Assembly (NCBI GenBank): GCA_977016875.1
Contig: CDRNST010000382.1
Location: 1,798,001-1,862,000, forward strand
Direction: 5' to 3'
Source: Pavona decussata
Taxonomy: Eukaryota
DNA: 64,000 nt
Under the pieces are notes generated by a model. It was not told where the DNA came from, did no database searches, and saw nothing but the letters and a program-made list of their open reading frames with translations. Shown here one piece after another: positions 7,133-62,120 of the stretch (position 1 is the first letter of the stretch; the number at the start of each line of letters is the position of its first letter). The translations under genes were made by a program, and so were the position numbers.

Positions 7133-7252
7133 TCTTGAGCCCTCACTATCTTTGGTCAGTGTTAACATCAGTCCTCATGCATGACATACCTATTGAAAGC
7201 CTTCTGGATAGTCAAGTGCTCACTCCTTCCCGCGTTTAAGTCATCGAATTAG

Positions 7253-8690
7253 AATGGAGGAAAATCTACGTTTATTATCAAGCTGCTTGAACCAGGCAAT
7301 CCAAGTAGTAAAGGAACTTGCTACAAATAGCGGTAGAAATGTTGTTGTTGGTACTTCTTTTGACACGGCTTTGACAAGCACAAATACAGCCATGACATCG
7401 GTGGGACAAGCTATCACTAGAGCTTGAGCAATGACGCACCAGTCTACTGCCAGAGGTTTGTACTCATGTTTATACAGTCGAGAACGTCTTTGAACCTCGT
7501 CGTCCACTTACACTGCCCCCGAAGAGAGCAAAAGTTGAAACAAAGAAGGTATTTGAAATAAATGTGATGGCATATTTCCAGCCTGGTAAATGAATGAGAA
7601 TGATGTATTATTCCAGAGAGTGACACAGGCATACTCGGAAAAAAGAAATCCGAGTGCTCCTACCAGGAGTCGAACCTAAGACCTTCCGATTACTAGTTCG
7701 GATGCTCTACCACTGAGCTACAGGAGACTCGTGGGAGCTAAGGCCATTAAACTAGGTTCATGGGACAAATATCCTGCATACTGCTAGGATTTAAATGTTG
7801 AATGTGTGGTAAATGAAATAAATGTGATGGTATATTTCCAGCCTGGTAAATGAATGACGCACCAGTCTACTGCCAGAGGTTTGTACTCATGTTTATACAG
7901 TCGAGAACGTCTTTGAACCTCGTCGTCCACTTACACTGCCCCCGAAGAGAGCAAAAGTTGAAACAAAGAAGGTATTTGAAATAAATGTGATGGTATATTT
8001 CCAGCCTGGTAAATGAATGAGAATGATGTATTATTCCAGAGAGTGACACAGGCATACTCGGAAAAAAGAAATCCGAGTGCTCCTACCAGGAGTCGAACCT
8101 TAGACCTTCCGATTACTAGTTCGGATGCTCTACCACTGAGCTACAGGAGACTCGTGGGAGCTAAGGCCATTAAACTAGGTTCATGGGACAAATATCCTGC
8201 ATACTGCTAGGATTTAAATGTTGAATGTGTGGTAAATGAAATAAATGTGATGGTATATTTCCAGCCTGGTAACTGAATGAGAATGATGTATTATTCCAGA
8301 AAGTGACACAGGCATACTCGGAAAAAAGAAACCAGAGTGCTCCTATCAGGAGTCGAACCTAAGACCTTCTGATTACTAGTTCAGATGCTCTACCACTGAG
8401 CTACAGGAGACTCATGGGAGCTAAAGAAGGTATTTGAATGTGTTGGTGAAGGTGGATGACGATAACGAAGAGGCTTACTCCAATAGCGTTCACTCGGATA
8501 GTTCGATGTTGAGGGTTGAAAGTACTGTATTAAGAGGCTTTATAACTCTTAGCACAGAAGGTAATGAACAGGCCTATTAGAAAGGTATTGTCTGATGCTA
8601 TTCAGATGAAGTATCCAACCGTGGCAAGTAAGGACCTAGTCTTTCTAGAGGCAAACCGGAGAAGACTAACACAACCAGTGAACTGTCACA
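7253..8690 (+). pseudogene. Decayed ORF of unknown, probably transposon-associated, protein interrupted by the SINE-like insertion
   Basis: MEENLRLLSSCLNQAIQVVKEL...AITRA*AM...SRERL*T... Two internal TGA stops; protein-like sequence resumes after the TSD at 8423-8438. Confidence 0.4.
7558..8422 (-). mobile_element. tRNA-derived SINE-like element with 260-bp monomer; tRNA-like heads at 7655-7727, 8078-8150 and 8338-8410
   Basis: Minus strand has A box TAGCTCAGTGG, B box GGTTCGACTCC and a cloverleaf with CTAGTAA (Thr-AGT-like) loop. 16-bp TSD AAAGAAGGTATTTGAA at 7542-7557 (copy at 7965-7980) and 8423-8438. Confidence 0.85.
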
Positions 8691-9152
8691 TTATGATACA
8701 GTTGAGTTGTATTGAGAGAGCTGATCGAGAGGGAAAGTGACAACATCTATGAGTTTAATAATTTTCTAGTGTGTGAACTCAGGTAATTTAGTAAGCAGCA
8801 CAAGATTTTGTACTAAACTTATAAAATTTTTGTGGGTTAATCTTCAGATTACTGAGTTAAAGGTACGAGGTAAATGTAACAGAAACATGACTGTTGACTT
8901 CCAGCAAGAAAAGATTGTGAGTCAGATGTGACATAAAAAGGATTGAATGTGAATGCAGAGCATCCTCAATAGCGCTGTGCACTATTACTGAAAATAGATT
9001 TTGTCACGGGAGATCAAAAGAGACCCCCCGCATAGACTCAGACAAACACTGGGATGTGATAGAGGAAAATGTATAAGAGAGTACTGCCATAGCAATACCA
9101 AAAAGCGAAAAACTTAGTGAAATCGCGCAGTTAGCGTCCAAGACGGACCGAA

Positions 9153-9825
9153 ATGGTAAGCACCCAACACTGCTGTTGGGGTGGATGCAAAACAGATGCA
9201 AGGTATCCTGACAAGTGGCGGAAATCCCTCTAAGAGGTTGAGCAATCAGGGAAGACTTATTCATTCCATTTCTGAAACCAACACAAGATATCGCGCAGTG
9301 CAAGCGTTGGCTAGCTGCTTGTTCACAGGATTTCTTTACGGAGAAAAACATAACCAGGAACACATATATTTGTGCTCTTCACTGGCCCAGAGAGAAAGGT
9401 CCAAAAGCCGAATTTCCTGATTCACTGAAAGCAAATCTAACACTAGCGCAAACAAGTCGAGCAAGGGCTCTAAAGAGAAAGCCACCGAAATCAAGAGTGG
9501 AGCCAGTGGCAAAGAAAGGGAAGTTTTTCGTCGAGAACTTTGACAAGCAGTTAAGAAAAGACGATTGCGATCTGCTAGAATTTGTAGAATCTTGTTCGGT
9601 AATCGATGAATCGGTGGTTTGTTTAATCCATAAACAATGTGATGATCATGATGATGTGACGATGACACTCGAACCACTCATTTATGAGGATCACACAGGA
9701 AAGCTGGTTTCTAATCAAGGCTCTCATACTGTATATTCCAAATACCAATTGTCTGCCAAGGTCGAGACCATGATTTTAAAGAATGAAGTATTCACCATGA
9801 AACTTCAGGCTCCCAAAATAGTAAG
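9153..9825 (+). pseudogene. THAP-domain N-terminus of a decayed ISL2EU/Harbinger-type transposase
   Basis: MVSTQHCCWGGCKTD...FIPF.KP...CKRWLAAC...NITRNTYICALHWP, a C2CH THAP pattern with stops and frameshifts. Confidence 0.7.
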
Positions 9826-9924
9826 TAAGTAGTCTGTCATAGGGGAACATCGTGCGAGATTCAGGTCTTATAAGTTTGGTTTGGTATGTCACAACTATGG
9901 CACACAACACTTTTGAAAGGGTAG

Positions 9925-12830: not shown

Positions 12831-13625
12831 TGAAAGTCTTGAAGCATTCTTGACTAGACTTATTAAATTTGTCTCAGTACTTTGATAATTTTCGAGAAGC
12901 AGGGTTTGATGACCTGGAGACAGCAGTCACACTATTGGAGGACGAACTAGAGCACACACAAGCAAGAGCTGCCTTTAAACTTTGAGAAGCTTCGCCAACC
13001 AACTACTTCTTCTCAGTCTTCTCACTCAAGTCATCCTCAGCTGGGAAAGCCAAGGATTTCACTGCAGGCAAAACTTACATTTCAAAGCGGTAGATTAACT
13101 GCAGAGTTCCCCAAAGAACCATCAGACCCAGAAGTACCCTGGAAGAGATTCATGATTCCCCAACCAAGATTTCCCACGCAGTATTTTTATCACAGTATTC
13201 TTCCACAAGTGTATGAGTCAGCCCAGCCACATCTACTGGCCCAGTTCAAAAGCTACTGGATTGAAGAAAGGAGAGACAGATGGAAGAGGAAACGGCTGCC
13301 GAATAGTTTGACAGTTTCAGTGACAAGAATAACCGACCTGTTGGAGAAAAATTTTATTACTTGAAGGAGAAGGTCATTCCAAAGCGGCACTTTTTCCCCT
13401 TTTGTCAATAGAAAGATAATGTAAACATTAGGTACCCACCAAAGTTTCAGCTTCCAAAGAGCTTTCTATCCTTATGAAATCTTTGCTAAGAGTAGCCCAA
13501 AAATCGTGCACGAGCGCCGCCATCTTGGAATATACTTAGCAGCCTGGCGATGCTTGTGTGACGTCATTGAGTTTAACATGAAGTTTCGCGGGAAGCTTGA
13601 ACACTCGACTTGTAATTTTGCAGTC

Positions 13626-16600
13626 ATGCCTTTTTGTTCAGCACCGTACTGTTCAAATAGGTCTCAAAGAGACGGCAAAAAAGGTATTTCGTTCCATCGT
13701 TTACCAGTAAAAAGAAAACACTTGGCAAAGCAATGGCTAATCAAGCTTGGCCAGGACAAAAAGTTCTTGCCAAAAGTAGAACACTTGTATGTTTATTCCG
13801 ATCACTTCACTGAGGATTGTTTTGAAGTGGACCACCGACATAATCTCCTCGGTGGTAAAACTCGCAAAAAGGAAGAAAAAACCAGACGCAGTTCCAACCA
13901 TTTTCAAGAAGTCTAGTTCCATTAAAAAGCAAGCTGCGAGCGAACGGAGACTAGCAAGTAAACGGAGAAAAGAGGTAAGTTATATTTCTTTCTTCAAATA
14001 AGCTTTATGTTCAAAATTGTTCTCTTCTTGTTTTATAAACGGCTAACATGAGGGCACGTTTTCCTTAATTGATTTCTTAAGCCAGCCACAGCTTATCAGA
14101 ACCTGAAAAATAGTCCAGATGAACATTTTCTAGCCGCTTTGAATTTTACCGTTATTTGCTCACAAAGCACAGCATTCGAGAAGAGCTTGTCTCATAGGTG
14201 CCGCATTGTTTTTGTTGTTGTTTAAAGGCGACAGAAAGCCAAAATTTGCCAAGGTTTAGTAGACTACGTGTTACTCTTTCGCTTTCTTGATCATACATCG
14301 CTGGTTAACTGTTTATTTCAGGCAGTTGAGTCCATAATCGAGAAGTCGAGGGCAGAGGAAATGACTGAAGTGCCTGCAAGACCATATGAAGATAGCTGGG
14401 CTATAGTAGAACTACTTGAGGCTGGTCCTGATAGCCATTTTTTCGTGAATGTCGACCAAACAGGCATGATTGGCAACAACTGTGGAATCAAGGTTGATCC
14501 CGCAGCTGTTAAACATTGTGTTGATGTAGGGACAGAAACGGAACCTATCCTTGAGTCAATCATGAAGCATTTTGTTGATGTCAGGACACAAACGGACCCA
14601 CCCAGAGAACTCATCATGGTCTCTGAAAACCCAGTGGTTCAAACCATTATGACACCCGAGGAAAAGCGTAAGAAAGTTGCAATGGACCACACATATGGCA
14701 AAACAAAGCTGGATTGTGCCCCTGAGAATGTTTTAACAAAGCCTGACCCTGAAATTAGTCCACTTGATGATGACCCGGAGATGCCTGATCTGTCTGACGA
14801 GGAATGGTACGATGACATAGGTGACACAGGGTCAATCTGCAGCTCAAACGCCTCAGACGAAGAATGGCTTCCTGATTCTGAAGGGGAGGATTCCGACGAT
14901 GAAAACAAAGAATATTCTGAGGATCCAAGTAGCAATTGGCTTGAAGACAACGAGCAATCGAGCAACGAGAGAAGGTCAATTGTGTTTGACAGCTGTTTGA
15001 AACAGTTGTTTCAGATTTGCAGAAATTGTGGTGATGTTCTGAAAAAAGCTTATCTAAAGGAGAGAGGAAGCCTAATTTGTGTTACTACCGTGTGCATAGC
15101 TGGTCACACCGAGCTTTGGTTTTCTCAACCGTTTACGAAGGGAACGGCAACGGGAAACCTTATTTGCGCTGGCGGAATTCTTTTCACAGGAAATCACTTT
15201 TCGAGAGCAAGTGCGCTTATGAGTGCGTGTAACATCAGGTTCTTTAAGAAAGGAAGAAGTATCTTTGGCCAGTGGTCAACAATGGTTACCTTACCCAGCA
15301 GAACGAAATTCTGCCGTCATTTAGGGGACACCCTCTTGCGCTTGCCAGGGACAGACTATGTAACAGTCCAGAGCACAACGCAAAGTATGGAACTTACAGC
15401 TTGATAGAGGTGACTACCGAAAAGATTGTCGATTTTTTCCTTGTGCAAGTATCAGAAGTTGCCAACTCTAATTGCATGGAGACGGAGGGACTGAAGAGGT
15501 GCCTTGACAAGTTAGAACCGGATGGGCAACTCATTGACATGTTAGCTACAGACAGGTAATAAACGTTTACCGGGTACAGGTACCTTATCCAGGTAAAAGG
15601 ACTCTGCAATAATTAGTAGGAGGGAGGGGGATGTTTGAGAAATGCGAACGAGATGGTGAAAAGCATGGCTTTACCCCCTTAACCCAGACAAAAAATTTAA
15701 ATACCAACCGCCCCGCATACCAAAACTAGATGAGACTACACACAAACCCGCGTCTCGTGGTCTTACAATTCCTCACTTCATATTGAGACAACTACCTTGT
15801 TTACTTACAATGCCTCGTACTGTTCCAACAATTAATTTGCATGACATTTTCATTGGGTTTGAACAATACTTCAAAGCCACTCTCCATTTCCACCAATTAT
15901 GCATGTCTCAGAATCTGTTCAGCTAGCTCTTGCTTACTTCCGCCGACGTTTAGACCCTGTTGTTTTAAATACAGTCTAAGCTGCTTACTTGTCACGGCTT
16001 GAGTACCTTTAGATCTGTCCAGCAAATATCTCGTCAATATTGCAATGTGAGTTTTACCCCATGTATCGTTTGACACTAGTAGAAGACAACTTCCCTTGTA
16101 CAAACAATTGAAGATTGTGTTAATTTGTTTTATTCATATTTAGAAGTACAGGCTTACCAGTTAAAATCGCCGCGTCTGAGAAAATGGTTTCCCTCCGAAC
16201 CCATGCGTCGTGTCTCCTCGTTGGCCGCTTTTTTAGACGATTTCGACTATTTCGGAGAGAAGTGATAACCTGCTAATTTGGGTAACAAATCGCCATTTGA
16301 GATTAAGTAGAGATTACATAAGAGGACATTCGTACTGGCTCGTAAACTCTTGTACATTGCGTTCGATTACACAGTACACAGTGATAAGTACGCAAATTTA
16401 ATTGACATCGGTATTTCGGTGAATGAACATTCCTTTTTTATTTAATATGAAGGCACGTCCAAGTTGCTGCTATGACGAGAAATGACAAGACCAACATCAA
16501 ACACAGATTCAACCCATGGCATTTGGCAAAGTCCGTCCGCAAAGATCTTGTTGCGGCTTCTAAGAAAAAAGAGTGCTCGGACCTTGTGCCGTGGATAGCA

Positions 16601-17271
16601 TCTGTTGTTAATCACCTTTCGTGGTGCGCAGCTTCGTCGGACAGGGATCAGCTACTTTGTCAGGAGAAATGGAAGTCAGTTGTGTATCACGTGGCCGGCA
16701 TTCATGAATGGCCGGAATTTCTGTCGTTCTCTGCGTGCAAGCACGAAGAACTGACAAGCGAGCAGAGGAGAAACAAGGTAAGGCTTCCAATTGGATCTCC
16801 TGCCCACAGTGCCTTGAAGGAAGTGGTATGGAAAGCAAAACTCCTCAAGGATGTCTGTCTCCTAGCGGATTTTATTCAAACCGGATGTTTGGAAGTATTC
16901 CATGGCTCCATGGCTAAGAAGTATGTACAGAAGAATCAACACTATTCTTACAATGGCATGAAGAGCAGAACGCAGCTTGGTATAATTGATCACAACTGCA
17001 ATGTAGGTAGAAAAGTGGCAACCACCATGTCAGGAGAACAGCGCTACAATTGCGTCTATCCACAGCTACAGAAGCATTGGGTTGCCAACCCGTATACGAA
17101 GAAAAGTCGTTCCAGTTTGTCCACGATCTTCTGCACGACACAATTTCATTGAAGCTGGGTGTCATTAATGTTCCCCAACTGGAAAGGCCAGCCCTACCGC
17201 AAAACATTGCACCAACTCCTCGTGGTAGCAAAGAAGACTTAATTGCAAGGCAGGTGTCAAGGTTCCATTAA
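13626..17271 (+). pseudogene. Kolobok THAP-DDE transposase; exons 13626-13974, 14322-15555 and 16453-17271; frameshifted
   Basis: THAP (MPFCSAPYCSNR..FHRLP..VYSDHF). Kolobok motifs LARDRLCNSPEHNAKYGTYS, SNCMETEG, ATDR|H (restored across a phase-2 intron), FNPWHLAKS, TGCLEVFHG, GIIDHNCNVGR. Frameshifts near 13870, 15250 and 17087. Confidence 0.9.
15897..16010 (-). pseudogene. SAP-domain fragment inside transposase intron 2
   Basis: VTSKQLRLYLKQQGLNVGGSKQELAEQI fits the SAP consensus L..L...GL...G.K.EL..RI. Confidence 0.5.
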
Positions 17272-17601
17272 GATACGCCTGAATGCTTTCAACTTACCAT
17301 AAATGTTCGAATTACCGGTTTTGCATAGGAGAAGGGACAGGTGACCTATTTACATAATGAAAACCTACAATGGCAGTTCTTAGAACTGCTCTGTCAAGGC
17401 AAACAACAGAGAACTCATTGTGCTCTGTAATGCAACGTATCCCTGTTTACACAAGAAAAAGAAAAATATTAAGATTTGGGCCAATTAATATCTAGACAAT
17501 CACTGGAACACTTTTGAATGGTCTCGGTCCTGGGGGAGAGCCAAGATGGACGGCAGCGTTTTTGAGTAGTCCGTCCTGTGTAGCTCTCCGCTTCGTAATA
17601 A

Positions 17602-18495
17602 ATGGCTGAAAAGGTAAGCGAATGCGACGAAAGTCCGCCCATCACTGGAGGGAAGAGAGTTGAAAGGCCTAGTAGCAGCAGCTCGCCCGAAATTCCTCCA
17701 AATAAGACTGCAAAGACTACAGAGCACATGGTCGAGCATGTCAATCTGTCGAGTATCTGGATCGCACTGAACAAAATACAACAGAACACTGACGAGCTTC
17801 TTAAAGAGAACAGAGCTTTGCGCAAGCAACACGAAGAACTGCAGAAGTCGCTAGAGTTCCACATTGACAAACTGGAAAAATTAGAGGCGGAGAATAACAA
17901 GCTGAAACAAGATGTGAGCTCGCTCAAGAAAGAAGTTCGCAAAGCAGAAGATGAAGTTGCCGACTTAAACGACGATCTAGATGGTCTAAAAAGCGATCTG
18001 GACACCGCTATATGCCAAATAGACGATTTTGAACAATACACTAGAAAACATAATCTCGAAATTCACGGCATTCCTGAGTCTTCAGAAGAAAATCTGTCTG
18101 ACAAGATCATCAAGCTTGGAAAGGTTCTCAATGTACATATTGTCAACAACGACATCGACATCTGTCATAGAATGGCTACGAGAAGATCTAACGGCGGTAC
18201 AAGACCAATCATTGTACGATTCAGATCATACAGAGCCAAAAATGAACTCTATAAATCCAAGAAGCACCTGAAGTCAGTAAGTTTAAACAACTATTTTCAT
18301 AATGCAGGAGCTGTTTATATTAATGAGAACTTAACTAACTATAGGCGTGAACTGTTCGCTAAAGTAAGAAAAGCTAAAAAGATCAACAACTGGCATAGCG
18401 CCTGGACCATTGACGGCAAAATTTTCGTCAGGAAGTCCCAAAGCGATCAAGTACATAGAGTATATGAAGTCGAAGATTTGGACAATATTCGTTAG
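17602..18495 (+). CDS. LINE ORF1 (coiled coil plus RRM/CTD-like region)
   Basis: Intact 297 aa; heptad region, EQYTRKHNLEIHGIPE, IDICHR, RPIIVRF, VYINENLT. Confidence 0.9.
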   Translation: MAEKVSECDESPPITGGKRVERPSSSSSPEIPPNKTAKTTEHMVEHVNLSSIWIALNKIQQNTDELLKENRALRKQHEELQKSLEFHIDKLEKLEAENNKLKQDVSSLKKEVRKAEDEVADLNDDLDGLKSDLDTAICQIDDFEQYTRKHNLEIHGIPESSEENLSDKIIKLGKVLNVHIVNNDIDICHRMATRRSNGGTRPIIVRFRSYRAKNELYKSKKHLKSVSLNNYFHNAGAVYINENLTNYRRELFAKVRKAKKINNWHSAWTIDGKIFVRKSQSDQVHRVYEVEDLDNIR

Positions 18496-18923
18496 GTTAT
18501 AATCAAATATTTTTCTTTCCCACCCTCTCCCACATGTAACATAACATTATTCAAACGTTCCCTTTCAAAACCCTCGCTTCCCTTTCGCTTCATCAATTAA
18601 TTATTTAAATTTTGGCGGAGAGTTTTGTAGAAGGGTTTTGTCTCTTTTCAACATGCCTTTAAAAAATGGCACTTATTCCCTTCTAGACAATAAGCTGCTT
18701 CGCAGTTTAATTAGTGTTTCTATTATGTTAAGTGTTAGTTGCCATAGTACACTTGTTGTACTCATCGTGATTTGTACCCGCCTTACTCAACGTATTGTAA
18801 ATTGTTGTCAGCGCATACACCATCTGCACAAAACATTTCCATCGCAAGGCTAAACGCTATCGAACGTTGCAAGCTGTGGTTCATGAATTGCGTTAGAAAG
18901 AAATTCATAAATCTAGTGTGTAT

Positions 18924-21900
18924 ATGACCTTAAATGCAGTTTCTCTTAATGCAAGAGGCCTCAACAAATCTATCAAAAGAAGAAAACTTTTCCGGTGGCT
19001 TCATATTAGAAAATTTGATGTAATTTTTCTGCAAGAGACGTACAGCGATGCTAGCTTGGAAAATTTTTGGCGAGCAGAATGGGGAGGTGACATTTTCTTT
19101 GCGCACGGCTCAAAACACAGTAGAGGTGTTATGATTCTTTTCAGTCCCTCGCTCAGCAAAGAGGTGACGAATGTTACTGCAGATAAAAACGGCAGATTTA
19201 TTATTGTAAACACCACCGTCAACGAAGACGAATTGTGCCTCGTTAATATTTATGCCCCAAATGACCAAAACCAGCAAATTTCATTTTTTCAGAAGATAAC
19301 CGATTCTATTCGTGGCCAGCAAACTGACAAAATTCTTATTGGTGGAGATTTTAACTGCCCACTGTCCGCTCCCGATAAATTTGGAGGTGAAGACATTCAA
19401 TTCAAAAAAAGTGTAATACATTCGATCGACGAACTCCGTTGCAACTATGACCTAGTTGATCCCTGGCGAGAACGACATCCACATGATACACAGTTTACGT
19501 GGAGAAATAGCTCCGGGAAAATCAAATGTAGACTGGATTTCTGGCTCATCTCGAAGCATTTATTATGCCGCGTTTCGAAAACCGACATTTTCGCCTATCA
19601 TGATTCAGATCACTCCCCTGTCACCATCTCGATCAAGCCTGAAGACAAACAAGAAGAAAGAGGCCCAGGCTACTGGAAATTTAATAATTCACTCTTAGAA
19701 AATGAAGATTTCCTCACAAAAATAAGCTTCATCATCAAACACGCCACCCAAAAACACAAGGATGTTGCTGATAAAAGGTTATTTTGGAAAATGTTGAAAA
19801 TGGAGATCCGGATATTTGCAATTCGTTTTGCGAAAAAGAAAGCCAACGCTGAAAGAAGCACGGAATTGAACCTCCTCCAAAAGCTAGCGAAAATCAGCTC
19901 ACGTATCGACGAAACCCCAGAAAATAGCTCCCTTGTAAACAAGGCTAGAAAACTCAAGATCGAATTAGATGAAATTGCCGTGCAAAAAACTAAAGGGTCT
20001 ATTATCCGGAGTAGGGCTAGATGGTATGAATTAGGAGAAAAATGCAACAAATACTTTTTTAACTTAGAAAAAAGAAGTTATGTAAAGAAACATATAACAA
20101 AGCTGAGGACACCTGACGGTAGCACTGTAGAGGATCCAAAAACTATATTAACCGCCATGAAAAATTTTTACAATCAGCTTTACACCTCTCAAAACCAGCT
20201 TTCAGCTGAACGCTTTTCTACCTTTTTCGATTGTGAATCCTTACCAAAACTCGACAGCACAAAGCAAGACCTTTGCGAAGGTCTGATAACCGCAGAGGAA
20301 TGCCTTGCCGCGTTGAAAACGTTTCAACCTAACAAGACTCCTGGCACAGATGGGTTAACAGCAGAATTTTACCTTCGTTTCTGGCCCGATGTTTCTGGTC
20401 CTTTGATAGACTGCTTCAATCACAGTGCCTCACTAGGAGAACTTTCTATCTCTCAGAGTCAAGGAATCATCTCCCTGATCCCAAAAAAGAATAAAGATCC
20501 TCTTCTGTTAAAAAATTGGCGCCCTATTTCTCTTCTAAACACAGACTACAAATTAGCAACCAAATGTATTGCGAAACGTTTAGAGAAAGTACTTCCGTAC
20601 TTGATAAACGGTGATCAAACTGGGTACATCAAAGGTAGATTTATTGGTGAAAATATTCGCTTAATTTCGGATATAATTGAACAATATGAAAACAAGGACG
20701 GAATGATACTTTTCCTTGACTTTGAAAAGGCCTTTGATTCTTTAGAATGGGACTTTCTCTTTAAAGTGCTTAACACTATGAATTTCGGTCCAAGTTTCCT
20801 CTGGATCAAAACGTTTTACACCAACATTTCTAACTGTGTTGTAAATAATGGCTACTCGTCGGAATTTTTTTCTCTCCAAAGGGGTGTTAGACAGGGTTGT
20901 CCTCTTTCAGGTTTACTCTTTGTTCTAGCTGTGGAGCCACTCGCCCACCAAATAAGAATCGATGAATCAATCAAAGGACTTGAAAACGGAAATAAGATCA
21001 CTAAACTCAGTATGTACGCTGACGACACCACCGCTTTCATTCGCGACGATTCATCCGCGGTGTCCCTCCTAACTCTTCCCGATCAGTTCGGTGACCTTTC
21101 CGGCTTGAAAATCAATAAGTCTAAAACCGAGGGTCTTTGGCTTGGTCCTTTGAAAAGCCGACTAGGCAAAGAAGAACCTTTTGGCATTTCATGGCCGAAG
21201 CAATACGTCATTGCGCTTGGAATCGCTTTCCCTTATCATGTTCAGGTTGGGAATAAAATCAATTTCGACGAGAGGCTTGCCAAACTCAAAAAAGTTCTAA
21301 ATACTTGGTCAAGTAGACATTTAACGATCTTAGGCAGAATTGCCATCGTCAAAAACTTAGCTCTCGCCAAACTTGTTTATAGTTGTTCCATATTAAATGT
21401 TCCCAAAGAATTTGTAAAAGAAGTCAACAGCAATATCTTCTCTTTTATTTGGAAATTTAAGCCAGATAAAGTCAAAAGAAAAACTCTGACCGGCCCAATA
21501 AGCCACGGCGGTCTTAATATGCTCAATTTTGCTGACGTTGTTAAATCGCTCAAGACTTCGTGGGTTAATCGTTACTGTCTAGCAAATGACCGCCATTGGT
21601 GTGCCCTCCTTGATTCGCTTTTAGGTAAGGTCGGTGGAACTCTCTTATTTCAATGTAACTACGATCTTAAATTACTCGACTTCAAAAATCTCTGTTTTTT
21701 ATAAAGACGTTTTAGCTGTATGGCAAGAGCTCAATTTCAAAGATCCACGTAACGCAAATGAATACAAACAAGAAATCATTTGGAACAATCGGTTTATAAA
21801 GATAAACGGAAAATCGTTTTATTATAGATCATGGGCTAATAAAGGCATTTTGAAAATAAGCGACCTCCTAAACATCCATGGCCAGTTCCTTTCGTTCGAA

Positions 21901-22635
21901 AACTTCAAATGCAAATATAGCGTTCGCTCTACTTTTCTCGATTATGCTGGTGTTCTTGCGGCAATCCCTAAAATTTGGAAAAGCGAAATCGTAGGTAATT
22001 TCACTAAGAGCGAGAACGAACCAGTTCCATCCCTTGACATCTCCTCTACAAAAAAAGCCCGTGTGATGCTTGCAGAAAGATCCTTTTCTCCCACCATCGT
22101 TGAAATCAATCTTAGAAAACAAGGGTTGAATGTAAAGGCAGTATACGAGCTTCCTTTTAAAGTCACAGTCGAAAACAAACTGAGGAGCTTCCAATTCAAA
22201 CTAATTCATAACATCATACCCACTAATCACTCTCTTTACAAAATGAATATAAAGGCTTCTCCAGAATGTGAACGCTGCCTCTTTCCGAACGAAACGCTTA
22301 TTCACATGCTTTGCGAATGCCCCGACGTTAAAATCTTTTGGAAAGACATAATGTGGTGGAATGCTAAGCGCTCTGACAACATTAGTCCTAGGAATACTGA
22401 AATCCTGTACGGTTACAAACCTGAAACGACCACCTTCTACGCGTTAAACCATTATCTTCTTATTGCTAAATATCATGTTTTTCTTGCAAGAAACCAGTCT
22501 GAGACTCCAAATTTAAAGGTCTTTCTTGCCTTACTAGACAGCAAGATCAAATGTGAAAGGCAAATAGCCATTAGAAATTCTAATTATGAAAAATATAGAG
22601 CTAAGTGGACCACTCTCAGCAACTACGATGCGTGA
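18924..22635 (+). pseudogene. LINE ORF2 (APE endonuclease, reverse transcriptase, C-terminal Cys/His motif) with one frameshift near 21690
   Basis: SLNARGL, LQET, NIYAPN, GGDFN, RLDF, SDH; RT motifs NWRPISLLN, LDFEKAFD, GVRQGCPLS, YADD; CERC..ETLIHMLCEC in the second frame (21634..22635). Confidence 0.93.
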
Positions 22636-38430: not shown

Positions 38431-38476
38431 TTGACACAAAAAAAGAGTGGCTGATAGTATACAATTATACTGTATA

Positions 38477-47655: not shown

Positions 47656-49533
47656 CTAGTCCAAGTTGAACTCTTGGATAACCAAGTTCATAGACAAGGA
47701 ATGTGTCAAAAAATAATTCAATTTTTTTAAGTATAGGAGACCAAATTTCACTTTTTCAAAAAACAAACCTCCATCAGTCCCCTGGGCTATGAGAACTCCC
47801 CAGTGATATTCTGTACCAAACATTTGCTGATACAACTGAAAATAATACTTGTGGTTTTTGTTAAGCTGAATAATTACAGTATTGTTGTGTTGCACCTTCA
47901 AACATATGTGTTGCTTTAAAAGGACACCTGTCAAAGTTTCACCAGGTTTAACTTGAATGTACTTAGACTCAGCAACCCCAGGGGTGCTTTTTTTCTTCAT
48001 CAGTAATAATGCCATCTGTTTTGCTGATAAAAAAGCCACACTTTGTAATAGAGACTCCTTTCTTCCCCTCGCTGTTTAGCTTGTTTATAAATGCTTCTGC
48101 AATGTTATCTTCATTTTGTAGTCCTTGTAGCATTGCAGTGGATTGGGGGTATTGTTCACCAATAACTCCTTTATTGTTTTTGATGGGGAAGTAGTTGGCT
48201 TGAAGCTTGCCACCCTTTTACATTTAGATGCTGTTACTCTGCCCTTTCTGTACAAAAACCAGTCAGATTTTTGACTTTGAAGCTTTGTTTTCTTTTCAAT
48301 AAAGCTTATTTCATCTTCAGTGAAGTTTAGTTTTCTCTTTATTCCCTGTGCCTTTTGCTTAATTTCATCAACACTTGGGGGGTGGTTTCTGAAAGGAGAT
48401 GTACATTCCAAGTGAAATGGTTGTTCTTGGATAGATGGATTATCACTTGTCAAAGGTGGCTCACTTGCATTATTTTGTTCTGTAATTTCTCTAGTGGCTT
48501 CAGTTGCTTCATTTAATCCAGGATCAGGTAATAAATGAAGGCCTACTGCTGAAGGAACTTTGTTAAAAAGCAATCCTCTGAACTGTTCAAGTAGATTCTC
48601 ATTGATTACAGTTGCCTTTGGGCGTGGATCATAATTCCTGGTTGAAGGCTTCACTGCCTTTTTCTTTTTCTTACCGATTTCAGGTTTGGTTAAGGTCATG
48701 TCTTCTAAATTACAAGCTTCATTGTGTGTCCTCTTTCTTCCTTTCCATAGGCATTTTTCGCCAGTGCAAGTGACCACTTCGTTTTGTCGAAAGTGTCTTC
48801 AAGTTCAATGAGTGCAGCACCTATGTGACGGCAAGCCCCATCAGAGCTGTTAAGTGAAAGAAGGTGCAAGTTGTTAAACGATGAAATACAAGGAGTATTA
48901 AACAATCGATCCCATGGTTGTATCATGTAACTTAAAGTATAATCACAAAGAAAACCAGTTGCACTTACCCGCCGATGCAAGGACAGTGTGCAGAGAGAAC
49001 AACACCACCACTGTGGATAATTAGCCAACCATCATACGTCGGCTTGTTTCCTAAAGGTGTTTTCTCTCGTTCCGTAGATTTAACAGAGAATTTTATGATG
49101 TGGTGTTCAAAATAGATGTTTTTGTTCCTTTGTAGATTGTACACATGTCCATCCCAGTGTACCGGTACCCCTCGAGAGACTTGTACGCCTTCAGGGATTC
49201 TTGGTCACATCCCTTCTTGTTTATCAAATAGCAGTATAAATCTTCCCAGGCAAAGTTTGGGGCATCTGAAAAATCAGTGCTCCAGTCAGAATGGAGGTTT
49301 AAAGGATTCGGGATTGTACCATCTTTTGTAAACAACTTAGCATTCACAACATCAGTTATGGACTCATTGTCCTCCGTCAATTCGAGAGCAAGTTCGTGAG
49401 CTTTTTCCGTCAGTTCGACTGATTCTTCCTTTTTTTTGTTGGAGACAGATATTCCTCGAGCTTGCAGGTATTTTTTAAGTTCTGGAACCTTCCAGTTTTT
49501 AAAATTTACTTCCTTTTCCACCAAACCAGCCAT
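47656..49533 (-). pseudogene. ISL2EU YqaJ/lambda-exonuclease-like protein with SAP and SWIM domains
   Basis: SAP (WKVPELKKYLQARGI), SWIM (AHCPCIGG|..ACRHIGA), YqaJ (QSQKSDWFLYRKGRVTAS, ESKY, YYFQLYQQM); frameshifted. Confidence 0.85.
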
Positions 49534-51119
49534 AATTTTCCGTAACTTTCTTGTATTTTCGCGGCAACTTTCCCCGCATTAGCCTCGCATTGATGCGAAA
49601 GGGCTCACTCGTCCCAGGGCCAACGGGGAATACGAATATCGTCTATTACTCAACTCTTTTACCCAGCGCTGCTCCGTATGCTTAGTAGAGGTCCAATCCC
49701 TTATCAGAATTCATCAATTCGCACATAAGGTAGTAGTTCCTGGGCCCACCTTTCTGCAGCATATGATAAACCTAACAAAGGGGGTTCGTAGCCACTTTCA
49801 CCATATCCGTCTAAACAAAGAGTTTTTCAAGGACCTAACCATGTGGAAAGCTTTCCTTGCTGGGTGACATGAGAGGTCTTTCTTTTTAGACACCACAGTT
49901 AGCCCTTCTCTGGATTTGGAATTGTATACTGATTGGGCCAGTTCTATTGGTGTTGAGGGTTACTGCAATGGTCAATGGTTTCAGAGAAGGTGCCCCCCTC
50001 ATCTTCAGTGGGACTCAACTCTGGGTATCAGTATAGAGTGGCAAAAAGGTTTCCCGATAGTTGTTGCATGCGCTATCTGATTCCTGCATTTCTTGGGGAA
50101 ACGAATTCAATTTTGGTGCGACAACATATCAGTCATTGCTATCATTAACTCAGGCCATTCATAGCCCCCTTGAATCATGGACCTTCCTAGGTTCCTTGTC
50201 CTCATCTCCATGAAACATAATTTCTATGTCAGAGCTTGTTACGTCCCCGGGGTGTCCAACGCAATTGCTGATGCCCTCTCACGTTTTCAGGATGCGCGGC
50301 TCCGGGGCCAGACCTGCATCCTCCGTCAACCTGTTACTCTGGGCGTGCTGCTGGCTATTCAGCCCAAACTTTGCACTAGGTTGGGGGAACAGGATTTTTC
50401 AATGATTTGGGCGCTCTTTACCCTAGCCTTTTCTGGGTGTTTTCGGTGTAGTGAATTCACGTACCAAGGGACCTTTACGTTTCGCCCTCAGTTTGATTTA
50501 ACTGCCCACTATGTATCATTTCATCCCAGCCTGGCTTGCCCGCAGCATATGTCAATTTTTCTTAAGGCTTCAAAGACTCATGCCTTTCACCAAGGGCAAG
50601 TAGGTATACGCAGTCACTGCTATACGCAATTATTTTTCTAGCTGCTCCTCCCATGAGCCGCTTTTTGTCTTTCAGTTGGGCCACTTACCAGGTCGGTGGT
50701 TGTCAACATCCTACGGGATGCAGCCCGCAATGCTGGCATACCCCATAATTCCCTCAAAGGGCACAGTTTTTGGTTTCAGTGCTGCTTTAACAGTGGCCAC
50801 TGCAGGCTTACCAGACTGGCTTATTAAAGTCTTAGGAAGGTGGTCTTCAGACTGCTATCAGCTTTACATACGCAGGCCCCGCAATGTGTTGATGTCTGCT
50901 GTGCCGTGCATGGCCGGCGTTACTTTCCCGTGATTTTTGTCATTAGTTGGCTTGGGGGACTCTTCCTTCAGTGGCGGTTAAGTCTCTCAGCGACTTCCCC
51001 AAGCTTTGCGTTTTTAGGTTATTTTTAGCTCTAACCTTGAAACTCGTTATATGCCTTTATCCGGCGCATGCCGGCGGAGTAGGCTCGGACGGGGGATGGA
51101 ATGTCACTGAAACCTTACG

Positions 51120-51738
51120 ACTTCTGCGCAGTGAGGTAGAAAACAGAGAAAGATGCGAAGGAGTGAGAGCCCTTGCCCTAAAAGAAAATTTATACAGTCC
51201 AGAAGATTGAAGGAACACAAGATCGCCGAAATCGGGAACAACAAGCGTGTCAGCATTGTTTTCTGGAAACCAGCCTTCAAATACAACACATTGTACATTT
51301 TCCAAGCAACCACACCCAAGAGCAAGTTGCCACATAGTGACCAACAAAGCAGCAAGGAGAGAATGCCTAAAAAGCAGGGTCATTGTTTTGTTTGTCTAAA
51401 AAGAAGCCATCTTGCGAGAGATTGCCCATCAAAATATGGCTTGTTTAAAGTGTTCTGGGAGACATCACGTTAGTCTGTGTGAGATGGACATGGGACCACA
51501 ACAACGACAGCCAGAATCGATAGTTAGCCAAAACAATGGAAATACTGCCAACACAAGAGCCTCGTACCTGGGATAGCATGATTCGATTTTGCTACAAACT
51601 GCACAAGCCGTCATAGGAACTGGAAACTCTTCAACTGGAATAAGAGCGAGATTTATTTTGACTTAGGAGACAGAAGAGTTACACCACTCAATGCACACGT
51701 GACCAGCTAAACCTCAAAAACAATCAGCAAAGAATTGC
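51120..51738 (+). pseudogene. BEL/Pao gag zinc knuckle and protease fragment
   Basis: GHCFVCLKRSHLARDCPSK..C..C..RHHVSLC; ILLQTAQAVI..ARFIL. Confidence 0.7.
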
Positions 51739-52878: not shown

Positions 52879-54380
52879 TGTAGAGGTAACCGCTATCATC
52901 TACTAATCACTGGAAACTTCAAAACAAAAAGCGGTAATATCGTGAAAGCATCACAGACCTACATCTATGAGTGGCTAAATAAATGGATGACAAAAGAAGG
53001 AAGACCAAAAGCATCATGCAAAGCAGTAAAGTATTTTGATAATTATATCGAATACTTAAAAGCTTTCCCACACCAAACTCGTGCGTACAGCCAAGACATG
53101 ATTGACCTCACTGAAGAAGGTTATTTCAATCCAACAGAAGAACAATGGAACACTTATCTACTGCACACAAACAACACGCAAGAGGAAATGGAAGATCAAA
53201 TGGAAATGACACCAAAGATTAAATTAACACCACCTGACAAGACTTTCATTGAGATAAAAGATTATCTTAATGAATCTGGTGCACGCAATCAAAAGGCAAT
53301 AGTACGATGGGCACACAAATTACCACAGAATGACCCCAGGTAACAACACATCACCATCCAGTTATTTCGCCGCAAAGAACTTTGATTAACATGTTGACTG
53401 AGCCCTCCAGGCTAATCGGATTGAAAGAACCGCAGACAACTGGCGCCAGAGATTAGAAGATCACAAGCCAAGATAAAACATGATGTCTATCGCTGAATCA
53501 ATAGCACTAATTAAAGAATGGCACCAACACAATGAATTCCAGATGGAAACAGAAGACAGCGGTAACCAGAGCGTGACAGCCACCTTTGATGCTATTCTAA
53601 GCAAGAAGAGTGAGAAAGTGAATAAAATAGTGCTATTTGGAGGCTCCAACGCTGGAAAATCCATTATCTTGAAATCGGCATTTGAAGTATTCGCAGATGT
53701 CAACTACATGTACCAGGGGGTGGCAGACAATTTCATGTTTGAAGGAGTGGAGGACACTGAAGTATGCATATGGGAAGAAGCACTACTCTCCGCAGAACAG
53801 CAAGAAACCATCAAACTCATCATGGAAAGCGCAGAAACAGCAGCTGCAGCAAAGTACCGCAAGAATGTTCAAATAGATCGCGTGCCGCTGGGAATAACAT
53901 GCAATGTATTACCATGGGTCATGATCCCTGGCGCAGCCCACAAGAAAGCATTCGAAAACAGATTAATCATCTTCAAGTGCACGGAAATGCCACAACTAAA
54001 TGATTACGCAGGAAAAGGGAGAATAAATCCACAGACGTGGCTCCACATTGACACAGTGTATTGGCACAGGCAAGAAGGTAAGTTGGGTTGATTACATACG
54101 GGGGTGATGTAGAACTTATTTAATATTAGCTTTACTTCACAACCTGAATGTAATCTTCTGAATACAACTTACAGGTGATGAACAAGAAGAGTCAGACTAC
54201 TGGGACGGAGACAGTGAAGACGGCGAGCTCCTATCATCCACGACTGATTCCACAATCAACTACTGCTTATCACGCAACGCCATCACAATCGTGGAGCACA
54301 ACAGAATCGTACCAGAAGAGAACCCACGGACTCTTAGTGTACTTAGTACAAGATGGACTGAGACCGAGGAGGAGAGTTGA
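52879..54380 (+). pseudogene. Endogenous parvovirus/densovirus-like NS1 (HUH-like N-terminus plus SF3 helicase)
   Basis: YHLLITG and YIEYLK (RCR motif II/III-like); Walker A GGSNAGKS, Walker B VCIWEE, B' IKLIMES..KY, motif C ITCN; stop at 53341 and frameshifts; candidate intron 54078-54174. Confidence 0.82.
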
Positions 54381-58214: not shown

Positions 58215-58542
58215 TAGATGGTGTTAAAGTGGGTTACAAACCTTGCAATGTTTTGCGCACGCATTCCCGAGACCAAAGGACAAACCTTCTCCTGTGCAGT
58301 GCCGAGGTGTTGTTTACAAGGTCGGCTGTGTTGATTGCAACTTCATTTATTATGGACAGACTGACCGAGCCTTGGAAACAAGGTTAAAAGAATATAAACA
58401 GGCAGTTCGGGTTGGAGAAAATAACTCCAAAATTACACAACAGGTGAACCAGTTTGTCCATAATATAGACTTCGACCATGTGACAATTGTAGACAAGGCT
58501 CGTAATTTTCACGAGAGACTTTTCCTCGAGGCTTGGTATTAA
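58215..58542 (+). pseudogene. Penelope-like element GIY-YIG endonuclease fragment
   Basis: PKDK..GVVYKVGCVDCNFIYYGQTDRALETRLKE..RLFLEAW. Confidence 0.85.
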
Positions 58543-59490: not shown

Positions 59491-59960
59491 CACCAGCAGT
59501 CACGAATGTTCCACCAGGGAACACAAAATGGGAGGACGGAAATCCAGCTACACAAAGCAAGTCATGGTTAAAGAAATCAGGAAAATTTATGCCAGAGTAA
59601 AGAATCTCTACAGAACAAAGAGAACATATCAGAGAAGGGGGCATACAGAGAACGATCCTGGAGCTCTGCACCTTTACACTCACCAGAATTTGGAGGAGGG
59701 CTAGAAAGACAAGACAATACACGATTTTTATTTTTGGGCAATAGATAATTGTGTTAAAAATGAATGAAAGGTTAGACCCCAGACATGGACACCATAAGTG
59801 AGAAAAGGATAGATGAGAGTAATACATCATGATAAGAATATGGTTGTCGACAAAATGTCGCACTTTTCACAAGATATCTACTGTTTATGAGTTTCAAACA
59901 AAGTTAATTGATAATTGATATGACTTTTCCATGTCAAGTTGGAAGCAAATGTTATGCCTA

Positions 59961-60234
59961 CAATCATCGAAAAAATTCTTGGGAAGGTTCCAAAGTTCTG
60001 CCTCGATTACACTTTCCTCCCCTCCCCTGTTTCAATGTTGAGCTTAAAAAGTCGATGTTGAGGCGTATATGGATTGTTGGGAATCCAACTTTGAACAGGG
60101 GGGCAGGGGGGAAGGGGAGACGACAAACAAAGGCCTAAACTTGCAAAAGTAATAAATGTGCCGATCTCCATAACAGAGACCCACTTTCTGTCACCTTCTT
60201 GAGTAACCTTCCCAAAAAGAATTGTCGTTGATTG
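59961..60234. mobile_element. MITE with imperfect TIRs
   Basis: CAATCATCGAAAAAATTCTTGGGAAGGTT versus AACCTTCCCAAAAAAGAATTGTCGTTGATTG; inner palindrome CCCCTGTT..AACAGGGG. Confidence 0.6.
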
Positions 60235-60649
60235 TCTGCCGAAATGGTGTTTGGACGTTGGGTCTCTATACTTTGTGAAAGTTTTCTAAGAAAAATTTCC
60301 ACACCTTATTTCTAAGATGTGATGCGAGCTACAGTTTATGTTATGTTGTTCTCCTTGTTTCGCAAAGGAATTTTACTTTTGGTAATTAATGTTTACTTTA
60401 AAGGAAGTGTACAATTGTATTTTTCTAAATACCTTCATGTGTAGCATATTCATATAATTTACTTCTATTACGTTTGATTTCCCTGTAAACCACAAAGTTC
60501 ATTGCGGAACAGAATACAGGTGTCCATTTCCAGTCCTTAACATTATTTTAGGGTGTTGGGGGGGGAGGGTGTGCGAATCGTTATGTCGGTAGACGGATAT
60601 GCTTATCTCAAGGAGTGGCGTCGCTTCCGTCTCTTTTAGTGTTTACAAT

Positions 60650-61982
60650 ATGGCAAGCCTTAACCACCACGATGTTAGAGAATGCGAGCAGCGACTGGTT
60701 TATTTAATTACCTACAATAGGCCGGATCTAGACAAAATACCTACAGCCTTTTCCGAAGTAGTAGAGCAGGCATGGACGGCGGTAACAGGTGTAAAGTTGA
60801 AACAATGGGTTGTTGCGCTGGAATACCACTCTGATGCAAGTTCCTCTGAAGCATGGAACAGCTCCCATCTTCACATGGTGCTCGAGCTGGAGAAGCGAAC
60901 AAGGTGGACGAGAGTACGCAAGTTTCTAGGCAACTCATTTGGCATCAAAGTCAATTTCAGTTCGCATCACACGTACTACTCTGCATACAAATATACTACG
61001 AAGGATGACGTAGAGGCTGTACATTCCAATTTCCACCCAGATTTAACAAGTGCACCACCTCCCAAAACAGAACAAGCTATCCATAACGGGAACAGTTCTG
61101 GCAAAAGGAAGAATCCCGCAAAGCAGTCACAAAAGCGTGGCCTTTCTGCCTATCAAGTTGCAGAATTGATTCAGGCAAAGAAAATAACTTCGCAACTCCA
61201 ACTTATGGCTTTTGTAGCAGCACAGAATCGAGAGGGAAAGAAAGATTTGTCTGCATTTATTTGCAATCGAGGAGGAAAAGTTGTTGACGAGTGTTTAGCT
61301 GTTGCCCTAGAGTTGTCTACAGTGGAAGAGAAGTATGCAAGAAGGCAGAAGTCGCACCTTCAACTCCTACAGGAAATGAAGGACCCAAACTGTGTAGCTG
61401 GTTGTAACGGCCAATGGCTACAAGCCGCTTATACCTTACTGCAAAAAAAATGAAATTGCAGTAAGCGTGTTTTCCACAGCAGTGTTTACGTTATTGCAAC
61501 AAGGGATGGGCAAGTACAGAAATTTATTTATTTATGGAGCTGCCAACTGTGGGAAAACTTTCAAGCTTTCCCTGCTAAAGGAAATCTACAACACGTTTTG
61601 TTACCCTGCAACCGCCACATTCGCTTGGGTTGGCGCGGAAGAAGCGGAGATTATTTTACTTACCAACTTCCGCTGGAAACCATCAATAATAGCGTGGGCT
61701 GACATGCTGTAACTACTAGAAGGGGATATCGTGCATTTACTAGCTCCTAAAAATTTTTCCAAGCGTGACATTAAGCTTGGCAAAGATACCCCGGTGTTTG
61801 CAACGGCTGACCCGCCAATTGTTTTTATCAAAGGAGGGGCAATTTGCCACTCAAACACCGAAATAATGGATGTCCGTTGGCAATTTTTCCATTACTGGCG
61901 ACAAATTCCCCCAGCGGGGCAACTACATTTAGTGCCTTGTGGACATTGCTTTGCTCAACTGATTTCACAACACAATAATTGA
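60650..61982 (+). pseudogene. HUH endonuclease (Rep) plus SF3 helicase, CRESS/parvovirus-like rolling-circle initiator
   Basis: Motif I VYLITY, II HLHMVL, III YKYTTK; Walker A YGAANCGKT, degenerate B IILLTNFRW, C PVFAT. Only an A8 frameshift (61443-61450) and one TAA (61710) interrupt about 443 codons. Confidence 0.85.
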
Positions 61983-62120
61983 CTTGCTGACAACCACAAC
62001 ATTACCAACTTGATCTTCTTATCGCTTACATCAATACTCCACCGCTGGGAAAAACATTACTCCATTTTTTTTTATTGAAATTAGCAATTTAAATATTGCC
62101 AAAACTGAAGTAAGCACATT

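Follow-up and report, generated by a model that had tools for sequence, protein, structure and literature searches.

Largely co-oriented relics of mobile elements and virus-like genes in a gene-free block of an anthozoan-like genome

Co-oriented trap loci are known in detail chiefly from Drosophila and mosquitoes. EVE-bearing piRNA clusters of Aedes reportedly hold virus-gene relics among co-oriented transposon fragments, and these EVEs are said to be mostly RNA-virus-derived and to yield antisense piRNAs. The flamenco and flam-like clusters of Drosophila are gene-poor, nested fragment arrays lying mostly on one strand; they span 0.2-1 Mb, owe their bias to Gypsy-type endogenous retroviruses, and both their promoter and their piRNAs have been established experimentally (PMC10643416, PMC10495008). 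Such clusters are defined by abundant, uniquely mapping, 1U-biased small RNAs of 24-31 nt from one strand and by a long precursor transcript that starts at a promoter at one end. Candidate flam-like loci can be recognised by strand bias alone (PMC10643416). In Nematostella vectensis, the one cnidarian studied in depth, unistranded clusters are the rule (PMC5731801), and the piRNA clusters of reef corals were described as transposon-poor and often genic (PMC13343488). A transposon orientation bias is not described in the available parts of either source. Unrelated elements are also co-oriented in introns, where the antisense bias is a footprint of transcription (PMC3517506, PMC1794541).

Here, a window of DNA with a total length of 64,000 nucleotides was analyzed, whose nearest named relatives point to an anthozoan-like host. 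It contains a block of ~53 kb which, like the flam-like loci, is a gene-poor array of nested fragments mostly on one strand. Unlike those loci, the block mixes LINEs, DNA transposons, retroelement scraps and virus-like genes, and it is known from sequence alone. With the clusters of Nematostella and reef corals it shares the probable anthozoan origin and a size in the range of kb to tens of kb; those clusters are, however, defined by small RNAs (PMC5731801, PMC13343488). In contrast to the Aedes clusters, just two replicase-like relics are present, one of them from a coral multi-copy family. As in intronic antisense bias, unrelated elements are co-oriented, but the search for an enclosing gene found none, and the host-like ORFs on either side lie on the relics' own strand. 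The reading we favour, with a probability of roughly 0.45, is that of an ordinary transposon graveyard in which the excess of one orientation arose by chance. The features of the block are as follows (E-values are those of Pfam matches; labels in quotation marks are from the earlier note on this DNA).

9242..9829, plus strand: THAP-like zinc-finger relic, the leftmost plus-strand relic of the block (THAP E=6.6e-4, below gathering score)
13361..23629, plus strand: single THAP-domain DNA transposon (TIRs ~215 bp, THAP E=4.5e-12)
17522..22931, plus strand: LINE-A, a non-LTR retrotransposon (Exo_endo_phos 9e-15, RVT_1 2.7e-37, zf-RVT 1.9e-9)
27016..30919, plus strand: LINE-B, a 5'-truncated LINE (RVT_1 3.3e-23, zf-RVT 7e-9, tblastn with LINE proteins)
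28911..30038, orientation undefined: non-coding piggyBac-like MITE (18-nt TIRs, TTAA)
31987..32389, plus strand: Harbinger/PIF-like DDE fragment (by eye, motif in translation; no Pfam match at E<=0.01)
32770..34178, plus strand: retroelement RT/RNase H relic, a "DIRS/Ngaro"-type item (RT_RNaseH_2 E=5e-4; ORF cluster of 2, haplotypes only)
34393..34668, minus strand: putative THAP-like finger start (by eye, from translation; no Pfam match)
39481..40090, plus strand: cysteine-rich ORF, present in both haplotypes (no Pfam match)
40794..41373, minus strand: P-loop helicase-like relic, possibly the "PolB-helicase" (by eye, Walker-A-like motif; no Pfam match)
42984..43223, plus strand: SAP-domain fragment, adjoining the N run on its left (SAP E=2.6e-4)
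43399..43581, no strand: N run, both sides bridged in the same orientation by a gapless contig of ENA assembly ERZ25073805
43626..45344, plus strand: retroelement-like relic (weak reverse-transcriptase match, RVT_1 E=2.9e-4)
45388..47370, plus strand: Harbinger/PIF-type transposase gene, in at least 4 ORF pieces (THAP 1.5e-6, HTH_Tnp_4 4.5e-10, DDE_Tnp_4 1.8e-21)
47659..49578, minus strand: SAP + YqaJ/alkaline-exonuclease-like relic, convergent with the preceding gene (SAP 2.2e-5, Viral_alk_exo 3e-3)
49583..50930, plus strand: RNase-H-like + tyrosine-recombinase-like relic, a "DIRS/Ngaro"-type item (by eye, from translations; no Pfam match; ORF cluster of 2)
51135..51470, plus strand: gag-like CCHC zinc-knuckle fragment (weak, zf-CCHC_5 E=5.5e-3)
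53477..54088, plus strand: Parvovirus-NS1/Rep-type SF3 helicase domain, a single uninterrupted ORF (Parvo_NS1 6.2e-10)
58228..58539, plus strand: GIY-YIG nuclease fragment, the "Penelope" item (GIY-YIG E=1.3e-3, below gathering score; no RT found beside it)
60542..61979, plus strand: Rep-like gene relic (38 relatives, one with PF01057; weak SF3 helicase match)

For the strand comparison, 111 ORFs of the window (68 on the plus and 43 on the minus strand) were scanned with Pfam. Transposon-type or virus-type domains were matched by 16 plus-strand ORFs versus 2 on the minus strand. When matching ORFs were grouped into independent insertions, the tool-supported coding relics between ~9.2 and 62.0 kb amounted to 12:1 in favour of the plus strand (binomial p=0.0034), a ratio that requires six sub-threshold Pfam matches. 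ORF units of at least 150 aa, counted without annotation, gave 11:1 (p=0.0063), inclusion of the leads seen only by eye gave ~16:3 (p=0.0044), and the strong hits alone gave 6:1, which is not significant. Between 7250 and 62000, stop-to-stop ORFs of at least 150 aa number 24 on the plus and 4 on the minus strand, and those of at least 60 aa are nearly even (144 versus 139). Thus, real coding relics, rather than noise, account for the plus-strand excess. All seven retroelement relics are on the plus strand, and the DNA transposons and both virus-like relics share the bias; co-orientation reaches ~85-92% across element classes. In simulations with free block boundaries and 15-22 ordered elements, however, comparable bias occurred in a fraction of 0.012-0.044 of windows. 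The plus-strand bias is real, yet smaller and less secure than the strong bias previously claimed. The SAP/YqaJ relic is the sole minus-strand relic with tool support, the THAP start and the P-loop helicase-like relic having been seen by eye only.

The THAP-domain transposon has an inverted repeat (13357-13577 and 23415-23635, 92%) that encloses three co-oriented coding regions. The entries at 13.4-17.2 kb that had been listed separately as THAP, hAT and Kolobok are this one element with its ~215-bp TIRs. An internal deletion has removed ~1.4 kb of it, and LINE-A interrupts it; the second coding region contains 1 frame change and 2 stops, the third 1 frame change. Its 26 relatives include Acropora and Oculina proteins, and in related copies of 6.2 kb (L001-L003) the genes follow the same order. 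Close to the right end of the element lies a small ORF on the opposite strand that recurs in related copies and was thus not taken as an independent relic. LINE-A, which is nested in this transposon and co-oriented with it, carries a poly(A) tail, a 14-bp target-site duplication, an intact ORF1 and a full-length ORF2 with one frameshift and zero stops. It is 93% identical to the 1239-aa representative of a cluster of 248 members (at 90% or more), with intact copies elsewhere, and is a young element. LINE-B, of the same clade at 41% aa identity to LINE-A relatives, is judged old, with no fewer than 3 frame changes and 7 stops; it is split by the MITE, which is present in the window copy and missing from the locus's other copy. 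The TSD of LINE-A and the TTAA of the MITE contradict, for both resolved insertions, the earlier description of fragments abutting without TSDs. For the labels BEL, Sola3, ISL2EU, IS3EU, RAG1-like, PolB, MULE and DIRS/Ngaro, either no tool support or weak domain matches were obtained.

Both virus-like relics are on the plus strand (n=2 only). The NS1/Rep-type helicase matches AAV Rep40/Rep68 (6e-8) and NS1 (1e-5) in the PDB, and its ORF is also found in the locus's other copies. Neither a nuclease domain nor a capsid gene was recognised around it; plus-strand ORFs lie at 52.7-56.2 kb. The Rep-like relic, whose sequence proved unrelated to the NS1-like one, is nearly full length compared with relatives of 443-486 aa and carries 1 frameshift and 2-3 stops. 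Named matches occur in Porites harrisoni and Oculina patagonica, and a fold search was unspecific. With 264 members on 36 contigs, the family is present in many copies in coral genomes, which makes a viral origin uncertain; it may itself be a mobile element rather than a virus.

That the pattern was created by the assembly, through recopying of one segment or a misjoin at an N run, is effectively refuted by the sequence comparisons. The window does hold two N runs (6321-6461 and 43399-43581), but the gapless contig crosses the latter with an anchor spacing of 7329 bp versus 7326 bp in the window, so that the two sides are contiguous and the length of the run is right to ~3 bp. ORFs listed as crossing this run are artefacts, and since the reading frame over it is undecidable, no relic was counted across it. 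Self-BLAST revealed no duplicated coding segments within the block, the relics not being copies of one another. A second haplotype contig and a second individual are both collinear with the locus, at 98.3-98.9%.

In agreement with the earlier note, the Pfam scan found no host-type domains inside the block, and the gene-free interval extends over ~69 kb between a RING-type (~-2 kb) and a BTB-type (~67 kb) host-like ORF, both on the plus strand. At seven background loci, host genes occur every 5-10 kb, unlike in this interval. One may ask whether the block lies within a giant intron, a lncRNA or another long unit transcribed from the minus strand, from which sense insertions were purged on account of the terminators and splice sites they carry, all without piRNA processing. 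It is well established that transposons within transcribed regions tend to lie antisense (PMC3517506, PMC1794541, PMC3088655), and the retroelements show the cleanest bias here. This explanation, including the removal of sense insertions, nevertheless appears improbable to us: no minus-strand host-type exon, and thus no enclosing host gene, was found in the flanks examined (10 kb left, 7.4 kb right), the nearest host-like ORFs are on the plus strand, and an intron longer than 60 kb would be highly unusual given the gene spacing at the background loci. In addition, AATAAA hexamers show no depletion on the minus strand (51 observed versus ~35 expected), which speaks against a long minus-strand transcript of either kind and in favour of a graveyard.

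Alternatively, the insertion machinery itself might set the orientation, by target-primed reverse transcription relative to the local replication direction or by nesting in a fixed orientation. The co-orientation of every retroelement relic, and of LINE-A with the enclosing THAP element, would fit. Replication-linked orientation biases known so far are weak. As the same bias is shared by DNA transposons and virus-like relics with unrelated integration mechanisms, and a single nesting event is resolvable, we consider this explanation very improbable.

A flamenco-type unistrand piRNA source locus in an anthozoan, recognised from the genome alone, is possible, though less probable than a graveyard. 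A long minus-strand transcript would start near 62-65 kb, a stretch without distinctive composition, run leftward and be processed into piRNAs antisense to the plus-strand relics; insertions of opposite orientation would have been lost, as they would either yield no antisense guides or cut the precursor short. Such a cluster is compatible with the genomic signature: the co-orientation in every element class is accompanied by diverse, nested and non-duplicated content, and the block would, tentatively, supply antisense copies of an active LINE, of many extinct elements and of two unrelated ssDNA-virus-type replicase genes. Moreover, unistranded clusters make up at least 402 of the 457 in Nematostella (PMC5731801), and strand-bias scans of Drosophila genome sequence alone foretold flam-like clusters that were validated (PMC10643416), which also counts against a chance origin. 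On the other hand, the significance is modest once boundaries are corrected, and 53 kb without a single dominant retroviral class is far below the 227-1085 kb of flam-like loci (PMC10643416). Transposon density is low in the coral clusters described to date (PMC13343488). Every relic except LINE-A and the THAP element (23 family members) falls into clusters of 2-4 sequences representing haplotypes only; these relics are therefore old, without close active relatives, and piRNAs from them would lack close targets. Minus-strand features lie directly beyond both boundaries (a tRNA-like array at 7.65-8.41 kb and a DDE_3 match at ~64.1 kb); they could bound a piRNA block, and they also suit boundaries chosen after the fact.

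In the graveyard reading, an insertion-tolerant, gene-free interval would have taken up independent insertions of unrelated mobile elements and two virus-like genes, which would then have decayed in place. The relics, their independence, the TSD-bearing nesting, the spread of ages and the persistence in two haplotypes are observed; we infer the absence of any filter on orientation. Orientation would have been random at each insertion, the plus-strand excess of 12:1 to 16:3 would reflect sampling together with block boundaries drawn post hoc, and no function would be implied by it. The fall to 6:1 with strong matches and the 1.2-4.4% of simulated windows with such a bias, in a scan that covered many windows, argue in this direction. 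So does a 22:16 lean to one strand of the long ORFs around other copies of the LINE-A family (LINE excluded), caused by the clumping of multi-ORF units. Against chance stand the spread of the bias over all classes, the unusual lack of genes and the nominal p of 0.003-0.006.

Overall, if the orientation is due to chance, the block is a caution, as 1-4% of transposon-rich windows should yield a count of 12:1 when a single block is picked by hand; strand bias thus needs a genome-wide null before a functional reading. If it is a piRNA source, co-oriented trap loci would predate bilaterians and would be predictable from assemblies of unstudied holobionts. The block would then be a concrete locus for piRNA-based memory of ssDNA-virus-like genes in corals, and a heritable memory based on small RNAs, directed against transposons and perhaps ssDNA viruses too, would exist outside Bilateria.

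Most coding relics between about 9.2 and 62.0 kb of the window, in the following referred to as the block, are read on the plus strand. For broken genes the outer bounds are given; leads by eye are motifs seen in translation without a Pfam match.

Features of the block (window positions, strand, description)
9.2-9.8 kb, plus: weak THAP relic
13361-23629, plus: single DNA transposon with a THAP domain and two conserved coding regions without Pfam family (THAP element)
17522-22931, plus: LINE-A, a non-LTR retrotransposon nested in the THAP element, with poly(A) tail and 14-bp target-site duplication
about 25.1-25.4 kb, plus: MULE-like motif, lead by eye
27016-30919, plus: LINE-B, an old, 5'-truncated and much broken non-LTR retrotransposon
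28911-30038, listed without strand: non-coding piggyBac-like MITE of 1.1 kb with 18-nt inverted ends and TTAA
32.0-32.4 kb, plus: second Harbinger-like fragment, lead by eye
32.8-34.2 kb, plus: weak RT/RNase H scrap
34.4-34.7 kb, minus: THAP start, lead by eye
40.8-41.4 kb, minus: P-loop helicase scrap, lead by eye
43.0-43.2 kb, plus: weak SAP fragment
within 43.6-45.3 kb, plus: weak RT match
45.4-47.4 kb, plus: Harbinger-type transposase in at least four pieces, strong matches to THAP, HTH_Tnp_4 and DDE_Tnp_4
47.66-49.58 kb, minus: SAP and YqaJ-like exonuclease gene, the sole tool-supported minus-strand relic
49.6-50.9 kb, plus: RNase H and tyrosine-recombinase scrap, lead by eye
51.1-51.5 kb, plus: weak gag knuckle
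53477-54088, plus: parvovirus-type SF3 helicase domain in one open ORF (Parvo_NS1, 6e-10)
58.2-58.5 kb, plus: weak GIY-YIG fragment
60542-61979, plus: nearly full-length Rep-like gene with one frameshift and two to three stops

Independently of any annotation, stop-to-stop ORFs of at least 150 amino acids in the interval 7250-62000 number 24 on the plus and 4 on the minus strand. With a threshold of at least 100 amino acids the counts are 48 and 28, and with at least 60 amino acids 144 and 139. Thus, the plus-strand excess is found only at lengths rarely reached by ORFs in random sequence of such composition. Two of the four long minus-strand ORFs are spurious, one being the antisense shadow of LINE-A ORF1 and the other lying inside a 66-bp tandem repeat (38084-38440), from which two likewise spurious plus-strand ORFs originate. 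Merged into units, the long ORFs amount to 11 on the plus strand and one on the minus strand. Among the 111 window ORFs scanned (68 plus, 43 minus), transposon-type or virus-type Pfam domains were found in 16 plus-strand and 2 minus-strand ORFs, and the comparison of 51 shorter ORFs with Pfam added four matches, all of them weak. When the window was searched by tblastn with 242 proteins, neither strand yielded additional fragments of LINEs, the Rep-like gene or the THAP element, and three long unassigned plus-strand ORFs gave no match in a PDB sequence search. A cysteine-rich plus-strand ORF of unknown family (39481-40090) has remained open in both haplotypes, and one short Logan contig contains it as well.

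The THAP, "hAT" and "Kolobok" items listed separately in the earlier note belong to one insertion (13361-23629), whose inverted ends of about 215 bp are 92% identical, and neither of the two latter class names is supported. Among corals, Acropora millepora and Oculina patagonica have relatives of this element, and others come from ENA and Logan assemblies; related 6.2-kb copies at three loci (L001-L003) contain the same three co-oriented genes together with small opposite-strand ORFs. Since the AlphaFold model of its 392-aa ORF (pLDDT 44) was too poor for a fold search, the superfamily was left unassigned. The BEL, Sola3, ISL2EU, IS3EU, RAG1-like and PolB labels of the same note found no confirmation in Pfam, whose coverage of such families is poor. 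The SAP and YqaJ-like gene is convergent with the Harbinger-type gene and may be the partner gene of that element, but was counted as an independent relic.

At an identity of at least 90%, the cluster sizes are 248 for LINE-A and 23 for the THAP element, and only allelic copies were found for all other relics, which are therefore old and unique. In LINE-A, ORF1 is intact, and ORF2 retains its full length, is interrupted by a single frameshift and contains no stop; the latter shares 93% identity with the 1239-aa representative of a 248-member cluster, and intact 1239-aa ORF2 copies are found at at least seven other loci. The LINE-A family is young. One of its intact copies is situated about 3 kb upstream of ORFs with a Piwi domain (L011 and L020, loci around other LINE-A copies). 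LINE-B is split by the MITE, which the other copy of the locus (L010) lacks, showing recent DNA-transposon activity inside the block.

The two virus-like replicase relics have no sequence relationship to each other. The SF3 helicase relic matches AAV Rep40/68 and NS1 in the PDB. The Rep-like gene is part of an uncharacterised protein family (443-486 aa) with multiple copies in coral genomes; one cluster comprises 264 members on 36 contigs, and named relatives occur in Porites harrisoni and Oculina patagonica. Most family members (P0087-P0123) lack a Pfam domain, while one carries Parvo_NS1 (PF01057). This family may represent a mobile element, possibly of a new kind, rather than an endogenous virus. 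A full-length relative gave no match in a PDB sequence search, and the model of the N-terminal part (pLDDT 67) yielded only generic ferredoxin-like fold matches, with a geminivirus Rep as a weak match at rank 27. The predicted fold would be compatible with an HUH nuclease but is not proof of one.

Furthermore, the integrity of the assembly was assessed. GC content is 33-47% across the window, which contains two runs of N, at 6321-6461, just left of the start of the 7250-62000 interval, and at 43399-43581; the counterpart of the first run necessarily lies within locus L007. By exact look-ups of window ORFs, the window was located at about 773,912-837,911 of the gapless ENA contig ctg133194 (ERZ25073805, 1,040,869 bp), with the block at about 783,100-835,900. 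The end of locus L006 (window 43273, record 817184) and the start of locus L004 (window 50599-50600, record 824513) are 7329 bp apart in the record and 7326 bp in the window. As these distances agree and the orientation is the same, the flanks of the second run are contiguous and its length is accurate to within about 3 bp. At this precision the reading frame across the run is undecidable; the flanks were therefore handled separately and no relic spanning the run was counted. ORFs listed across Ns are artefacts. Single-base indels against ctg133194 (1-3 bp over several kb) show that the window was taken from a sister assembly or from a version differing slightly. Identical proteins are also encoded on a 1.55-Mb contig.

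Self-BLAST detected no duplicated coding segments within the window. At 98.3-98.9% identity, the relics recur in unchanged order on another contig of the same sample and on two contigs of a second sample, and the copies differ only in the MITE and one tandem duplication. In L010 (12900-18375) an extra tandem duplicate of the 3.6-kb segment 36857-40459 is found, including the 66-bp tandem repeat. As to INDEPENDENCE and reality, the array is real and predates the haplotype split. That the block is an artefact is considered next to negligible.

The surroundings of the block were inspected in the window and in its flanks, 9.9 kb on the left and 7.4 kb on the right.

Features around the block (position, strand, description)
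about 2 kb left of the window (L007, 12402-12890), plus: RING-finger ORF, nearest host-like sequence on the left
7654-7727, 8077-8150 and 8337-8410, minus: three tRNA-like sequences (44-51 bits), the only Rfam matches
about 64.1-64.6 kb, minus: DDE_3 (Tc1/mariner-type) relic
about 66.9-67.3 kb (L004, 16314-16724), plus: BTB-domain ORF, nearest host-like sequence on the right

Both host-like ORFs lie outside the window, and the gene-free interval extends over about 69 kb, compared with background loci where host genes (kinase, ABC transporter, GPCR, Piwi) occur every 5-10 kb. Antisense bias of transposons in transcribed regions has causes unrelated to piRNAs (PMC3517506, PMC1794541), and the block might lie within a different kind of minus-strand transcription unit. 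However, no minus-strand host exon was seen in the window and both flanks, and such a unit is judged improbable. On the minus strand the poly(A) hexamer AATAAA shows no depletion (51 observed versus about 35 expected); on the plus strand 47 were observed versus about 45 expected. The tRNA-like sequences have an odd anticodon loop and occur once per unit of a 423-bp tandem repeat (7430-8424), which may represent a tRNA-derived repeat or an array of decayed tRNA genes, situated at the left edge of the block on the opposite strand.

Binomial p values are 0.0034 for the 12:1 ratio of tool-supported independent relics, 0.0063 for the 11:1 of merged ORF units and 0.0044 for the 16:3 reached when leads by eye are included, and 0.012-0.0015 for the 16:4 to 20:4 counted originally; the strong matches alone give 6:1, which is not significant. 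The block boundaries were picked after the data had been seen, and minus-strand features lie just outside both of them, the tRNA-like array (7.65-8.41 kb) on the left and the DDE_3 transposase (about 64.1 kb) on the right; a minus-strand scrap resembling an integrase lies about 0.5 kb beyond the left end of the window. When 15-22 ordered elements were simulated with freely placed boundaries, 1.2-4.4% of cases contained a stretch biased to at least this degree. At ten 20-kb loci around other LINE copies, long ORFs outside the LINE are distributed 22:16, compared to 21:4 in the window after subtraction of the three LINE-A ORFs (Fisher p=0.05), although this null is weak because the sample is small and gene-rich. 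Thus, of the strong bias originally described, the plus-strand excess as such is real in the sequence (12:1 or 11:1), but for a single window it exceeds chance only modestly, and it does not withstand a scan of many windows. A mechanistic insertion bias as its cause is regarded as very unlikely.

In flamenco-type clusters fragments are oriented against the direction of cluster transcription, and scans for strand bias have led to flam-like loci that were validated (PMC10643416). At least 457 piRNA clusters are described for Nematostella, 402 of them unistranded (PMC5731801). In three corals, 47-107 clusters with transposon density below expectation are described (PMC13343488). The piRNA-cluster interpretation of the earlier note is neither supported nor excluded; that the block is a minus-strand piRNA source is considered less likely than not. 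Our rating of these explanations is based on the per-window chance of 1-4% and on the probably small share of orientation-filtered clusters among transposon-dense windows. Overall, we tentatively favor, with a probability of about 45%, that this block of the Pavona decussata genome is an ordinary transposon graveyard with a chance excess of one orientation.
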